64,000 nt of DNA from Corallochytrium limacisporum Hawaii. Lineage: Eukaryota > Protista > Pluriformea. The number at the start of each line of letters is the position of its first letter. Position 1 is the first letter of the stretch. Made by a program: the position numbers and the translations under genes. The stretch spans positions 186,588-250,587 of the forward strand of contig PDIP01000019.1 in NCBI GenBank assembly GCA_002811645.1, given 5' to 3'. The notes beneath the pieces are model-generated. The model saw nothing but the letters and a program-made list of their open reading frames with translations, did no database searches and was not told the origin of the DNA. This document shows, piece by piece, positions 28,231-62,640 of the stretch.

Positions 28231-29700
28231 ATGTCAGCTGGAACTTGGGATGATCTCGACAGCGTCGAGCAGGAGGCCTTTGATTGGTCTGATAAGGTGC
28301 ATGATGTGCTCTTGATCGCAATAAAGGATGATGAAGCAGTGGAATTTGATATTTACGAGAAATTGATGGAATGCACGGAAGCAGTTTTCGGTGAATTTCT
28401 GCAGTACATGACAGAGGAATCATATGATGAAACACAACAGAAACAGGCCAGTATTCCAGAGCAACGGCGCATTGTTCTCCACTTTAGTGCTCTGGTCAAT
28501 AATTCTAACGTATTCAAATGCATGGTGCACCTCATCAGTACCAGTTGGCATGATGCAAAGCTTGTGAACGACTGGGCGGAAATGGACCCCGAGAGCAACC
28601 GGCACGAGTCTGAAGACGAGGACATCTGCAAGGACGTTGAGCTAGACTCAGGTGGGCGTCTGGGTGTATTCCGATGGTTGCATCTGTTGGCATCGCTACA
28701 AGTCGTCGGGCTTGATACGTTTCTGGCAGAAATTGCTCCGGTTGTCGGGGTATTTGCAATGCGTAGGCACGCCATGAAGGCCTCTGACCCTGCCCTTGAT
28801 GTTGTCTTGCAGGCCCTGGCACTGTCCCGTAATCTCAATCCCCAACACTCATTTGTGCGGGAGATCCCCGGGCCTTTTCAGGCTCATAGTTTGTACCCAA
28901 TTGACCGCTATGAAGGCTGGCAAGGCCGCCTCTTCATGGCGTTCCAACGATTGCGTCAGCAAGAACTGGCAGTCAGTCAGAAACATCTTCGGGACTCTGT
29001 GCGTAAAAATGGCGATGTCTCCAATGGCCCCAATACCCCTCGCGACAGCACGATGCGTGACACCCCGAGTGCGGGCTCCACAGACTCCAAACTCACCCGT
29101 GGTTCATCTAAGAAGGATGGAAGCACCATGCAGCGGGTCAACTCTGGGACCATGCTTTCGCGCATGGGCAGCGCTGGTCGCAATCCACTAACCGAGGCTG
29201 CTATTCATGCCCACGAGACCGAAAAACGTGGTCGTAATGCGTACATTGACCCATTCTACGACGTCCTTCTGGCCCTCAACAGTATCGACGGCAACACTCG
29301 GTCTCCCGCAGCAGCCCTATGCATTCGCGGTAGCAATCGCTATGGTGAGTGTCTTCCTGCGTACATTCGCAAATACCATCTTCACATCACCACCATAATT
29401 GCTGCCTCTGGTTTCAAAAACAAGGTGGTTCAGAATTACGAGGATGGAGAGCGGGTGATCATGTGCGACGACCTCACTCAGCAGCTGGCATTCATGGCAT
29501 ACGGATGCGCAACCGTCTCCCAAGGGGATTGTTTCGAAGAGGTCCGCAAGGTCCTCTCCGTTCTTGAACTCCGTGCTATTCATTCCCTCCAATGGGAGAT
29601 GGTCGTACTTCTACGCAGCATGCAAAAGACCCTGAGCCCGCGATCGGATGGCAAAGAAAGGGTCTTCCTTGGCGATGAATCCTTTGCTGTCACCACTTAA
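28231..29700 (+). CDS. Hypothetical protein (489 aa)
   Basis: Long ATG ORF in good context (aaccATGt) with protein-like composition; no family recognised. Confidence 0.8.
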   Translation: MSAGTWDDLDSVEQEAFDWSDKVHDVLLIAIKDDEAVEFDIYEKLMECTEAVFGEFLQYMTEESYDETQQKQASIPEQRRIVLHFSALVNNSNVFKCMVHLISTSWHDAKLVNDWAEMDPESNRHESEDEDICKDVELDSGGRLGVFRWLHLLASLQVVGLDTFLAEIAPVVGVFAMRRHAMKASDPALDVVLQALALSRNLNPQHSFVREIPGPFQAHSLYPIDRYEGWQGRLFMAFQRLRQQELAVSQKHLRDSVRKNGDVSNGPNTPRDSTMRDTPSAGSTDSKLTRGSSKKDGSTMQRVNSGTMLSRMGSAGRNPLTEAAIHAHETEKRGRNAYIDPFYDVLLALNSIDGNTRSPAAALCIRGSNRYGECLPAYIRKYHLHITTIIAASGFKNKVVQNYEDGERVIMCDDLTQQLAFMAYGCATVSQGDCFEEVRKVLSVLELRAIHSLQWEMVVLLRSMQKTLSPRSDGKERVFLGDESFAVTT

Positions 29701-42933: not shown

Positions 42934-43713
42934 GTCACACGGCTTCGGACCTCTCGTAAACATGAACATCGCATCTCCTCTTTGCACCATCTCTTTTGCA
43001 TCAATGGAGATCGTCTTACAGCACAGAATACAAACTAGCTCCTTCTTTACCATATGTTGATACTGTATTACTTGTGGTTCCCTGCTACTGTCCTTCCGAT
43101 CTGACGGGTCAATAACATTTCGGACGGGGCCCTGATTCTCTGTTCATCTCCATGCTTTGCCCCTTCAAACACCATGGGCTCAGGCTGCTACGTCAACCAG
43201 CTGCAACGCCCTCCCCACTGCACCTACCGCACCCCCCAACCTTCCGCAACCGCAAAGCGTTGCCCAATTTTTCCGTTCGGGCTTGCTTACGTTTCGATTA
43301 CCAGGACGGGCACCCGCCGGCCGTAAGAAACAAGTGTCCCGGGCCGTAGGGATCGCAGTACGAGTCCAAACCCGGCAACAGAGGGTTCGTACGTGTTTTC
43401 TGACTGATCGTACGCGCTTTCGTTGGCTGTCAAATTCTTAGGGTGGAAGTATTGCGGTCCATATGGCAGGCACATCATCTTGCACCAGGGTGTGGCTGTC
43501 GTGGCTGCTGGTGGTCTGCAGAGGTGTGATTCGTTCTTCGTTTTCGGGCGTGGTGCATAGTATTTAAACGAGATAGAATGTCCAACGCAAACCGGCCCCA
43601 GGCCATACTGCCACATCCATAGTCTGCCCCAAGAATAGCATTGTGGTCTCCTCATGATCACAATAGCATCGAAACTTTAGTTACCAGCAAACGGAGAAGC
43701 AAAACACCTGTTC

Positions 43714-46542
43714 ATGGTGCGCTCGGGTGGTGGGTCGACCATTTATGGGTCGACTGTTAATGTCGACAACAGTGACCTTTCGTCACTGTTGTTGCAATGC
43801 GATTTGGAGCCCATCCACATCTTGGGCGCCATTCAGAACCATGGTGCTTTGATAGCCATCCGCCTTCAGTCTGGCATGATCGGAGTAGTTAGTGAGAACC
43901 TGAAGGAATGGGTTGGTGTTGGCCACGAAGAGGTTCGTGGCCGCCATTTTGCAGACGCCTTTGGAACAGAGTGCTGGAGATGTTTGCAGGAGTTTATGGC
44001 CACCGGTAGAGATCGTTTGGCCACTGTAATGCCCTTCAAGACCGGAGTTCCCAACCCAACTGGCTCCGGTAGTGAGGACAGGGGTGATGTAAGTGGAGAG
44101 ACCATGCATGATGTGATGTTGGTTGTGAGCAACGTGTATCTCGTGGTAGAGGTCTTTGGTCCTACGTGTGCAGGACACATTACCCTTGAATCTTTTCGCC
44201 AGCCTTTGAGCACGATTTTCGCTGCCACTGAACTACAGCAAGCGTACGATATCATGGCCGAGGAAATCAAGCAGCTCTCTGGCTTTGATCGTGTCATGGT
44301 GTACAAATTTGACGAACACGGCAATGGTTGTGTAGTTGCTGAGGCTAAGGAAGCTGAGATGGAACCTTATCTTGGGCTAAATTATCCCGCATCAGACATA
44401 CCTCGTCAAGCTCGTCGCCTGTACTGCAAGACATTTGTTCGTGTCATTGCTGATGTCACTGCCCAACCTGTAAACCTTTTTGCAGTCGGAGATGTTCTGG
44501 ATGAACAGCCATTCGACTTGAGCATGTGTAGTTTGCGTGCAGTAAGCCCCATGCACATCCAATACCTAAAGAATATGGGCGTCGGGGTGTCCATGAGTTT
44601 CTCCATCATTAAGAAGAATCATCTATGGGGCCTGATTGCGTGCCACAACCGCACGTATAAAAAACAGAACTTGCCCTTGCTCATGGTCTACGAAATGATG
44701 TCACAGGCGTTCAGTCTGCATCTGCTGCGCATTGCGCAGATGGACTATGAGCGCTACTTACAGACTCAAAAACAAACCATGGCAACAATTCTGAGCAGCG
44801 TCGACTGTAGCGAAGCACCTGGTCCTCAAATAGAGGAACGTGCCAAGGACCTGATGACTGTCTTTGGGGCCGGTGGAATGTATTGCCGCCTGGCCGACTA
44901 CGAGTTCACAGCGGGAGAGTGCCCCAAGAACTCCACAATCAAGCAGGTTGTAAATTTCGTCACAAGACAGTCACAACAAGTCAAGAGTGGCATTTTTCAG
45001 ACCAACTGCCTGAGCTCAAAGATTGCGGTAGTCCATGACAGTATCGACGTTGCCAGCGGTGTGCTGGCCCTGCATTGCAAGGGTAAAAACAATGTGATTG
45101 TCTTTTTCAGGCCCGAGGTTGTGCGCATGGTGAGCTGGGGCGGTAATCCGAATGATAGCCTGAAGGTTAATCAAGAAGCAGATGGTGGCGTCCACATTTC
45201 ACCTCGTCGCTCTTTCGCTATCTGGAAGGAGAACATGTGCGCTACTTCAAAGCCCTGGACTGAGATTGAGTGTCGCGAGGCAAATCAGTTCCGCCTGGTG
45301 GTCGAATCCTTCTTGAAGAGCCACGAAGACTTTATGCTCGAGAAGCGTCTCCAAAGCAATCTTAGTACCTCCTCCGTATCGAGTGACTCTGGCTATGATG
45401 GTGATATCTCTCAGCAGAGCAGTGTCAAGGGCATGCTGGGCCTGTTGGTCAGTGAAGATATCTCCATGGACATGAAAACCCGGCTGAACGATATTGTTGA
45501 GAGCCCGGACACCATGTTGCGTCTATTGAACGACATCCTGGATATGAGCAAAATGGAGGAGAACTTCAGCCATGTCCAGGAGCGGGAGTTCATGGTTATT
45601 GCCGATCTACAGGGCGTGTTTACGTACTTTGAGAAACACTGCGAGGAGAAGGGCCTCACCTTTGATGTGCAGTGGAATGTCAATCCAGAGGGCAACCACC
45701 TAGTCGGAGACCCCCATCGGATCCGCCAGGTTGTCATCTCCTTGCTCGAGAATGCCCATAAATTTACCTTCGAAGGCGGAGTCACCGTCAAGGTCAAGAC
45801 ATCATGCAACCAAGAGACACGGACATGCGAACTAAGCATTGCAATCAATGACACAGGATGTGGGATTCCTTCAGATAGCCTAGAGCTGATCTTCCAGCCG
45901 TTCAAGCAGGCTCAGGAAGTCGCTACCAAGTCTTCCGGCGGCAACGGGCTCGGTCTGACAATGGCCCACGTCCTCAGCCGCACAATGGGCGGTAAGATTG
46001 CAGTCAATTCTCTGGTGGGCAGTGGATCAACCTTTACTTTCTCCGTTAAACTGCCAATGGCTGACGATGCGCATGCAGTCATGAGTGCCGACGATACAGT
46101 CAGCGTAGGGTCACTGGTAGGTAGCACCTGTCTGGTTGCCGTTGAGCAAGAGCAAACTCCCGCAGACATCTGCTCTTTTCTCGAGGATGACACAATGCAG
46201 TGTGATGCAGTGACATCTCCAGTGGATCTGGTTCATCGTCTGCAAGAAACAAAGTACGACATTGTCCTTGTGTCTGTCCATTTCCAGCGTACTGATGTCG
46301 AAGAATTGCGGCGAAAAATGCAAGAGGGTGACCTGGGCGATGTCAATAGGGAGACTCCGTTGGTTTGCATAGCTCTGAATGAGGAGGAACAGAAGCGCAT
46401 CGCGGACCAACTGGGTGGCACTTCGCATGTCCTGATTATCCCTAGAGTAGAGAGCATGCCAGAGTTCCGCAAGAGAATCCATCGGATCATGAAGGACGCC
46501 CGCAGTGCTAGTTTAGTCAACAATGAAGATGACAATATTTAA
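43714..46542 (+). CDS. Phytochrome-like photoreceptor, biliverdin type (PAS-GAF-PHY-HisKA-HATPase-REC) with degenerate phosphorelay sites
   Basis: C29 in CDLEPIHILGAIQNHG, GFDRVMVYKF, YPASDIPRQARRLY, LRAVSPMHIQYLKNMGV, LWGLIACH, WGGNP, PRRSF; HATPase N/G1/F/G2 boxes; C-terminal receiver-like domain. Confidence 0.93.
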   Translation: MVRSGGGSTIYGSTVNVDNSDLSSLLLQCDLEPIHILGAIQNHGALIAIRLQSGMIGVVSENLKEWVGVGHEEVRGRHFADAFGTECWRCLQEFMATGRDRLATVMPFKTGVPNPTGSGSEDRGDVSGETMHDVMLVVSNVYLVVEVFGPTCAGHITLESFRQPLSTIFAATELQQAYDIMAEEIKQLSGFDRVMVYKFDEHGNGCVVAEAKEAEMEPYLGLNYPASDIPRQARRLYCKTFVRVIADVTAQPVNLFAVGDVLDEQPFDLSMCSLRAVSPMHIQYLKNMGVGVSMSFSIIKKNHLWGLIACHNRTYKKQNLPLLMVYEMMSQAFSLHLLRIAQMDYERYLQTQKQTMATILSSVDCSEAPGPQIEERAKDLMTVFGAGGMYCRLADYEFTAGECPKNSTIKQVVNFVTRQSQQVKSGIFQTNCLSSKIAVVHDSIDVASGVLALHCKGKNNVIVFFRPEVVRMVSWGGNPNDSLKVNQEADGGVHISPRRSFAIWKENMCATSKPWTEIECREANQFRLVVESFLKSHEDFMLEKRLQSNLSTSSVSSDSGYDGDISQQSSVKGMLGLLVSEDISMDMKTRLNDIVESPDTMLRLLNDILDMSKMEENFSHVQEREFMVIADLQGVFTYFEKHCEEKGLTFDVQWNVNPEGNHLVGDPHRIRQVVISLLENAHKFTFEGGVTVKVKTSCNQETRTCELSIAINDTGCGIPSDSLELIFQPFKQAQEVATKSSGGNGLGLTMAHVLSRTMGGKIAVNSLVGSGSTFTFSVKLPMADDAHAVMSADDTVSVGSLVGSTCLVAVEQEQTPADICSFLEDDTMQCDAVTSPVDLVHRLQETKYDIVLVSVHFQRTDVEELRRKMQEGDLGDVNRETPLVCIALNEEEQKRIADQLGGTSHVLIIPRVESMPEFRKRIHRIMKDARSASLVNNEDDNI

Positions 46543-46737
46543 CCGGTTGTGCCTTGTTTGTGATTCTATGTCACTGCGCCACCGTACCATTGTAATGCCT
46601 GTCATTTTCACATACAAACAGCAGATGGGACACCTTTTGCTTTAGCTTGTCTTTTGCTTGATCTATATTAAGTACATCGAATGTGATTTCGCTAAATGTC
46701 ATTGATTTCTGCTCTTAATCCTTCTCAGGAGCATGTC

Positions 46738-60714: not shown

Positions 60715-62640
60715 ATGCCTCAGTTTGAAACGAGCTCGGGAAGCTTTAGCTTCTTCGCCCTGACCATGATGGGCATGGTCTTGGTGTTTGCTTCTATCGG
60801 TCTACCTTGGGGTGAATTCGGAGGGCTGTACTTCTACCTGACCGGCATCTGTGACAAACCCACTGCAGTGAATGCCACATGCGAAGATTATCACGTCTCC
60901 GATAATCGCACCACAGAGGCTCTGGTTTTAGTTTGCATCGGTGGCGGACTTATCTTTCTCGGCCTAATTACTCGAATCCTTGCTCTCGGGCTTGATGTTT
61001 CCAAGAAAACAAACAAGATTGTGCGCACAGTCGCGTCTTTATTCTACGTCGGCGGCAGCGCCATGGCGTGTTCTGCTTTGGCTCCTATGATATCCTTCCT
61101 GCGGCCTTGGCAGACCGGTGCTCTGAACGTTGGGGTCGTTGTGGTAATCGTAGGATCCTTTGTTTCTGCATTCTGCGGATTGGCCAGCGCCATCCTTTCC
61201 TACCCTCCAGAGAAATTGTTGAACGACAAACGCCCTGCGGTTCCGGCACGTGTCGAACATACCTACGAGGATCCCACAACATTGAAGTCAGACAGCTCAC
61301 GGGGCCATCAGGATGAAATCGAAGTAGTACATGACAAACATTCCGACATTGTGGAGGAGCAAGAACGTCGCCATTACAAGCGGGCTATGAAGGGTCTATT
61401 CGTCACTCTTCTGCTGATCGTTGGAATCGTTGGTACTGCTTTGACTGCTTCCTTGGTCCACAGCCAGGTTAACTTGCAGCCAAGTAAGTACACCGTCTCA
61501 TCTCGTTCTGCTACCTCACACCCCATCGTTGCAACCAGCATTTATACTCAAGACCCAGTGGTCTGGGCCCCTGCCGGACGCAACGGCCTCATAATGGTAA
61601 ATGAGAATCTGGCACAGCAACAAGCAATGAACTTCAATGAGCTCAGTGACTGTGACTCTCTCTCTGTGATGCACGTGAACGTCACTCAGAATCTTAACAG
61701 AGAGCCCGATAACATCATTCTCTGCATGAGTTCTCGTAACGGCGCCGTCAACCATCGCTACCAGCTGGCGAGCAGCAACCTTGGAATCATTCCCGGATTC
61801 GAGCCGATCACTTGCGGTACAACCTGTCAAATCACTGCTGACGAAATCAATATGGTCTTCTGGGTCGCTGGTGGCGATAGTGGTGTTGTGACCATCTTGA
61901 ACCTGGAATATCCTGCGGAACCGTACAATCCCAACGCTCGGCCCACTCCATTGACCCTTACCGGATGGCAACACACCGTTGATACCGTGTTCTACGTTCA
62001 GCCTATTCCAATTGACGCTGAGTTATCGTCCGAAGGCATGCCTTTCGTCCTCATGACCACCATGGATACAAATGGTACATTCTACATTGACGCTGCCACT
62101 TACAACGACGTCACTGGTGAACTTGAGTTCTACAACACTCTGGCTCTGAAAAACACCAATGAGAACCCCGACGTCTTTGTACAACCTCGTCTAGGTATGA
62201 CTCAGAGTCCTAATGTAGTGACTTTCCGACCGGTTATGTACCGTACTTCAGATGGTGAAATTCTGGCTCAACCCGACACTGGCGTTCACTTCCTCATTTA
62301 CGACGGAAGCAAGTTCCAGACGTTCTACTTCGACACTACTATTGCTCCTTCCATCGGACCCCTCAGTGAAGTGATTGACAGCTTAATGAATCCCTTCGCG
62401 GATATATGGGTTCTGATGGAAGATGATACCGGTGAACAAATAACCGCATATGCTGTTGACGAATACGGCATGATCACGTTGTCAGACTTATCAGATGACA
62501 CACATCCAAAGTATGCCTTCAAGTATATCGAGTCTCATGCGACCGACACCCCCACGGGCATCGCTGTACTGATTGATGTCAACGCCATTGTATTGACTCT
62601 CAACCACGGGGGGGTATTGACAATTGAAGATTATGGTTAA
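60715..62640 (+). CDS. Multi-pass membrane protein: claudin/PMP22-like four-TM module, fifth TM and large extracellular domain
   Basis: TM1 ending in LPW, loop with two Cys (GIC-x9-C) and N-glycosylation sequons, TM2-4, charged loop, TM5, then a ~390 aa beta-rich domain. Confidence 0.8.
   Translation: MPQFETSSGSFSFFALTMMGMVLVFASIGLPWGEFGGLYFYLTGICDKPTAVNATCEDYHVSDNRTTEALVLVCIGGGLIFLGLITRILALGLDVSKKTNKIVRTVASLFYVGGSAMACSALAPMISFLRPWQTGALNVGVVVVIVGSFVSAFCGLASAILSYPPEKLLNDKRPAVPARVEHTYEDPTTLKSDSSRGHQDEIEVVHDKHSDIVEEQERRHYKRAMKGLFVTLLLIVGIVGTALTASLVHSQVNLQPSKYTVSSRSATSHPIVATSIYTQDPVVWAPAGRNGLIMVNENLAQQQAMNFNELSDCDSLSVMHVNVTQNLNREPDNIILCMSSRNGAVNHRYQLASSNLGIIPGFEPITCGTTCQITADEINMVFWVAGGDSGVVTILNLEYPAEPYNPNARPTPLTLTGWQHTVDTVFYVQPIPIDAELSSEGMPFVLMTTMDTNGTFYIDAATYNDVTGELEFYNTLALKNTNENPDVFVQPRLGMTQSPNVVTFRPVMYRTSDGEILAQPDTGVHFLIYDGSKFQTFYFDTTIAPSIGPLSEVIDSLMNPFADIWVLMEDDTGEQITAYAVDEYGMITLSDLSDDTHPKYAFKYIESHATDTPTGIAVLIDVNAIVLTLNHGGVLTIEDYG

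Follow-up and report, generated by a model that had tools for sequence, protein, structure and literature searches.

The question raised by this locus is whether a phytochrome can abandon His-Asp signalling while keeping the output module of a histidine kinase, and how a light signal might then leave the protein. A first-pass annotation of the window, by which we mean the whole analysed stretch of 64,000 nucleotides from Corallochytrium limacisporum, had proposed a phytochrome unable to run a His-Asp phosphorelay but with its ATP-binding domain kept. This proposal is upheld by our analysis, and the gene is apparently expressed and under purifying selection. As encoded, the protein cannot autophosphorylate on an H-box His, nor can it accept phosphate on a receiver Asp. 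By sequence and predicted fold it is a phytochrome, and neither an active hybrid kinase nor a canonical plant phytochrome.

The gene and its photosensor

The frame of 942 codons which the annotation had described as open was confirmed at 43714-46542. In its translation Pfam recognizes PAS_2, GAF, PHY, a partial HisKA, HATPase_c and a trace of Response_reg. The features to which we refer below are the following, all on the + strand of the window:

43714..46542, +, intronless phytochrome gene, 942 aa, PAS-GAF-PHY-pseudoDHp-CA-pseudoREC (ORF; Pfam; jointless contigs from two isolates)
43608..46630, +, transcript-shaped contig of a second isolate (run X4, presumed RNA), 3023 nt, wholly within the window
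43798..43800, +, Cys29, biliverdin-type attachment site preceding the PAS domain (alignment column)
43798..45312, +, photosensory core PAS-GAF-PHY with PASDIP (D228), H281, Y284, H311, WGG and PRRSF (conserved columns; model)
45262..45372, +, PHY output helix, residues 517-553, containing His537 (AlphaFold2 model; spacing test)
45352..45423, +, Ser-rich segment, residues 547-570, in place of the first half of DHp helix 1 (alignments; HMM; model)
45421..45561, +, rest of the DHp hairpin, residues 570-616, of canonical length (partial HisKA; PDB alignments)
45706..46056, +, CA domain (HATPase_c) with N680 and the G1, F and G2 boxes (Pfam, E 9.7e-24; conserved columns)
46123..46521, +, pseudo-receiver of CheY-like fold with S854 (46273-46275), Ile909 and E811 (weak Pfam match; model)

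The run X4 contig, from an isolate differing from the assembly, begins 106 nt 5' of the ATG, ends 88 nt past the stop codon and is colinear with the gene, with no joints and no indels. The run X1 contig starts at 43624 and shows no difference from the gene, and the region 43300-43533 upstream is not covered by run contigs. That both runs are RNA is a guess of the tool used; because of the gene-shaped ends and the uncovered upstream gap we read the contigs as transcripts, and the gene is probably expressed. Sequence errors, which the annotation had named as a possible source of the lesions, are not behind them, and neither are introns: both isolates carry all lesions, and neither the X1 nor the X4 contig contains a joint at which a hidden intron could restore the H-box.

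The closest named sequence matches are bacterial with 28-35% identity, which could point to contamination. However, the gene lies within eukaryotic housekeeping genes, its neighbours encoding eIF3c and an AFG3-type protease. Together with the identical X1 contig, the jointless X4 contig and exact short pieces in metagenomes, this leaves an assembly error, a hidden intron or bacterial contamination barely credible, and at the contig level this explanation is already refuted. Of the metagenomes with these pieces (window 45041-45237 and 45694-45926), one is from a sponge and one is marine, and hence this organism occurs in nature with the same allele. Elsewhere in the window, two ORFs at 28231-29700 (489 aa) and 60715-62640 (641 aa) have no Pfam match at E 0.001.

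The photosensor is well conserved. Counting as conserved, here and in all other domains, those columns in which conservation among homologues reaches 85% or more, we find 14 of 15 kept in PAS (93%), 42 of 44 in GAF (95%) and 16 of 17 in PHY (94%), and the predicted photosensor superimposes on solved photosensory modules with an rmsd of about 3 Å. Both the PAS-GAF-PHY core with the DIP, His, PRxSF and WGG motifs and the bilin-attachment Cys expected of a phytochrome are present. The latter is Cys29, which is aligned to the bacteriophytochrome motif CDREPIH in a column with Cys in 91 of 98 homologues, while the GAF Cys is absent (SPMH at the site). Because Cys29, D228, H281, Y284, H311 and PRRSF are present and the genome encodes a heme oxygenase (E 5.6e-45), biliverdin binding at Cys29 may reasonably be inferred. 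This points to a unicellular holozoan, a relative of animals, which senses red light.

Phosphorelay residues and the ATP-binding domain

The loss of the His from the DHp domain, as claimed by the annotation, is borne out by alignments and HMM. The position given for it, with an H-box at Met585 and exchanges of His to Met and Pro to Arg, turned out to be an artefact, the true site lying about 18 residues upstream of Met585. In a MAFFT alignment of 100 phytochrome kinases, in a second one with the kinases of the genome and with an HMM built without the query, the His position is taken by Gln567 (45412-45414), in a column with His in 97 of 98 aligned sequences. YDGDISQQ is paired with FLANMSHE and followed by a gap of five residues where LRTPL is expected. 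An ungapped register would instead put Asp562 at the His position. The distances to D610 are 25 residues for Met585, 43 for Gln567 and 48 for Asp562, compared with 48-49 residues from the canonical His to the Asp.

The six-residue hairpin described before was likewise an alignment error, as the remaining hairpin has canonical length. In PDB alignments SVKGMLGLL (570-578) falls on the canonical NGILGM of solved kinases, and ISMDMKTRLNDI (residues 583-594) is the beginning of DHp helix 2. The HisKA match covers only model positions 19-65 with 23.3 bits, under the cut-off of 26.9. Whichever register is used, Gln567 with the deletion or Asp562, the DHp domain has neither the H-box His nor the ExxT/N phosphatase motif of a hybrid kinase, and two of its five conserved columns (40%) are kept. 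The search for an alternative H-box His, which had been proposed as a check, found none. The one candidate considered, His537 ('SHED'), lies 22 residues past the last PHY Trp and 73 before D610 and belongs to the PHY output helix.

The segment which stands in place of the first half of DHp helix 1 contains ten Ser and one Thr in 24 residues. In the AlphaFold2 model (mean pLDDT 83.7) the output helix ends at residue 553 and is followed by coil (554-569); pLDDT is below 50 at residues 556-582, after which DHp helix 2 follows. The Ser-rich loop is thus predicted to be disordered, although the low values may partly come from the lack of close homologues and from the monomer model.

The ATP-binding domain shows the opposite picture. 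The boxes reported as intact are so: N box 677-685 with the catalytic N680, G1 713-718, F box 726-730 and G2 743-748, i.e. the complete set of a hybrid kinase. Conservation amounts to 18 of 19 columns (95%), the sole loss being the first N-box Asn, which is Ser676 and had been overlooked before. The domain is well formed in the model.

The receiver has a weak Pfam match (Response_reg, E 0.12), and the model gives five strands and five helices. As the annotation had stated, the phospho-accepting Asp, found in 61 of 62 aligned receivers, is replaced by Ser854, which the model places where strand beta3 ends, and the conserved Lys by Ile909 (alignment and model). Its claim that the acidic pair is gone holds for one residue, as V810-E811 is half lost. 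The conserved Thr is lost as well, so that of the phospho-Asp, acidic pair, Thr/Ser and Lys of a hybrid-kinase receiver only E811 is left. Five of 15 conserved columns (33%) are kept compared with a median of 93%, a value partly underestimated by local misalignment. Since the PAS, GAF, PHY and CA columns are kept and those of DHp and receiver are eroded, the loss is selective.

The two isolates differ at 20 coding positions, 15 synonymous and five replacement (pN/pS 0.10-0.15, p below 1e-4), so the gene does not evolve neutrally, a point on which the annotation had made its proposal depend. Within the output module there are six synonymous changes and one replacement (pN/pS 0.05-0.07, p 0.0007-0.004), a signal of small numbers resting on these seven changes; the receiver alone has only two changes and is not significant (p 0.05-0.10). 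None of the differences falls on a phosphorelay position. Selective constraint on the fold does not prove catalysis.

Sister phytochrome, relatives and known systems

The assembly searched (24.1 Mb, 286 contigs) encodes a second phytochrome:

L019:4334-5992, -, G000:C171, 552 aa, photosensory core only, stopping at an H-box remnant

This protein has no kinase module and ends two residues past the remnant, which itself ends in MSH. It has His instead of the attachment Cys, and Tyr at the equivalent of H311. The two Corallochytrium photosensors are sisters (support 99, FastTree, 341 sequences) with 35% identity. As the window gene carries the lesions described above and its sister is truncated, both phytochromes are cut off from His-Asp output, each in a different way.

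The sister also bears on the possibility that the output module is a vestige, retained solely by its fusion to a useful photosensor and heading for the truncated state, or that the whole gene is decaying. The sister, which ends at the H-box and has lost its chromophore Cys, fits this explanation, as does the long kinase-core branch (1.51). On the other hand, about 400 output codons are open in two isolates with the excess of synonymous changes given above (6 to 1), and only phosphorelay residues were lost, with the ATP pocket and both folds still in place. We regard both a vestigial module and decay of the gene as improbable.

No orthologue was found by word-index protein searches, an HMMER scan of 1.84 billion representatives and a metagenome DNA scan. 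The closest homologues are generic, with 28-35% identity over the full length and none above about 35%, and the top matches among named sequences are bacterial. Among Atlas look-alikes an Ascomycota phytochrome cluster comes first (0.92), by a small margin over bacterial clusters (0.91). In the FastTree analysis no group is strongly supported as sister to the Corallochytrium sensor pair; among the proteins in the tree, none could be recognised as coming from plants, algae or fungi. The kinase core does not group with strong support with any paralogue of the genome. In the searchable literature, which leaves the main phytochrome-evolution reviews outside, no paper joins Corallochytrium and phytochrome.

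Like plant phyA and phyB, the protein combines a PAS-GAF-PHY sensor with a His-less kinase-related domain which retains the N, G1, F and G2 boxes. Such a domain belongs to the definition of a canonical plant phytochrome (PMC4525182); the other marks, a PAS-PAS repeat, a GAF-linked Cys and no receiver, differ. In the Corallochytrium protein PHY stands directly before DHp and a receiver fold is found at the C-terminus (Pfam, model), the Cys is of the PAS type, and the loss of the His comes with a five-residue deletion and a Ser-rich loop. In plants the receiver was lost together with the His (PMC4525182). Because the PAS-PAS repeat is lacking, the Cys is PAS-type and the receiver is kept, the loss of the phosphorelay apparently occurred independently of plants, as judged from architecture and not from the tree.

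In Arabidopsis phyB the kinase-related domain (HKRD) serves for dimerisation; its N, G1, F and G2 boxes are present but the His is not, and phyA was little affected by mutations in G1 and G2 (PMC5712524). An intact ATP pocket therefore does not imply catalysis. The term 'undescribed system' used in the annotation was too strong, since phyB is also His-less with all four boxes (PMC5712524).

With fungal phytochromes and bacterial hybrid bacteriophytochromes (PAS-GAF-PHY-HK-REC) the protein shares the domain order and the N-terminal Cys. It differs from them by the loss of the His and the Asp, which they keep (97/98 and 61/62, respectively), and by the absence of a long N-terminal extension.

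The reuse of a kinase scaffold without a His-Asp relay is shared with PsmA, Caulobacter DivL, Pseudomonas RetS and chloroplast sensor kinase (CSK), none of which is a bilin photoreceptor. In RetS the G boxes are eroded. Pseudo-histidine kinases are thus a known class (PMC12963549), and the hybrid PsmA from Streptomyces has neither the His nor the phosphatase motif and has also lost the ATP-binding residues (PMC12963549), which are intact in the Corallochytrium protein. CSK carries Gln, Tyr or Glu at the His position, yet ATP binding is retained (PMC5054060). Since His-less kinases are already known, the novelty would lie in the convergence on the plant solution, read here from the sequence of one species.

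Possible routes of the light signal

The reading which we consider most likely, at about an even chance, is that, as in plant phytochromes, light-dependent partner binding carries the signal while the pseudo-kinase serves as a dimer scaffold. Biliverdin would be bound at Cys29 and undergo red/far-red photoconversion. The dimer would be held by what is left of the DHp helices, together with the CA domain, and the ATP pocket would be kept mainly for the fold or for nucleotide binding. The flexible Ser-rich loop would interrupt the helix from PHY to DHp, and because of this break the signal may leave via partner binding to the photosensor and/or to the surfaces of pseudo-kinase and pseudo-receiver, bypassing the HPt proteins of the genome. 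The broken helix of the model argues against light control of the pseudo-kinase by the usual helix route. The scaffold reading, for which a partner protein was not identified, gains support from the sister, which together with the window gene makes two phytochromes of this genome whose output does without phosphorelay. The ATP pocket, preserved as in active kinases and unlike that of PsmA and of the pseudo-kinase G000:C279 described below, would leave room for catalysis.

The main rival, which we hold to be unlikely, is a light-regulated GHKL-type Ser/Thr kinase in which the CA domain phosphorylates the Ser-rich loop, Ser854 or another protein. Ten Ser in 24 residues lie just where the phospho-accepting His meets the gamma-phosphate of ATP, the CA domain keeps 18 of its 19 conserved columns, and ETR2, PDK and BCKDK, all His-less, phosphorylate Ser/Thr (PMC5054060). 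However, the His-less CSK from Arabidopsis binds ATP while autophosphorylation was not detected (PMC5054060). Moreover, Ser-rich low-complexity loops are readily produced by decay, no orthologue was found which could show conservation of the serines, and the required catalytic base was not identified. Doubtful is also the scenario in which a two-component phytochrome became a light-regulated serine kinase independently of plants, with a Ser-rich acceptor loop for the H-box, Ser for Asp and possibly the sister phytochrome as partner.

A further explanation is that the protein regulates the canonical phosphorelay in a light-gated manner, comparable to RetS and DivL in bacteria. In addition to the window gene the genome encodes ten hybrid kinases, all with H-box His and receiver Asp, and several stand-alone receivers. 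Together with these, the following proteins are of interest:

L017 and L018, two HPt proteins (G000:C175 and C88)
L031:2292-4220, +, G000:C7, 643 aa, two receiver domains and bHLH (domain content)
L032:925-3747, +, G000:C176, Ser/Thr kinase of 941 aa with C-terminal receiver (domain content)
L035:4070-7180, -, G000:C279, pseudo-kinase of 1037 aa, GAF-PAS, Leu in place of the His, ATP pocket eroded, receivers degenerate

The intact hybrid kinases, HPt proteins and stand-alone receivers would offer targets for such a regulator, and DHp helix 2 and the CA domain are retained. However, receivers dock on the DHp surface surrounding the His, and this is the part lost; furthermore, the kinase core lacks a strongly supported paralogue grouping, and no partner gene was found in the gene neighbourhood. 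Such a regulator is in our view rather improbable, and the same applies to its possible routes, namely binding to or heterodimerisation with a hybrid kinase (by inhibition or by His phosphorylation in trans), or binding to an HPt protein or response regulator.

Whether the signal leaves by partner binding or by a kinase activity, the protein represents a second, apparently independent departure of a phytochrome from His-Asp signalling, here with the ATP pocket kept and the receiver still attached. It thereby bears on the disputed role of the plant kinase-related domain as scaffold or Ser/Thr kinase. This question becomes testable in a simple protein and in a protist which can be transfected (10.1101/2020.11.12.379420).

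Some of the other proteins deserve a remark. G000:C279 is a second pseudo-kinase of the same genome and more eroded than the window protein. G000:C7 is a candidate for a transcription-factor output of the phosphorelay, and the architecture of G000:C176 is one which we take to be Rim15-like. The second HPt protein (L018, C88) has an MG-xC N-terminus, which is suggestive of lipid anchoring.
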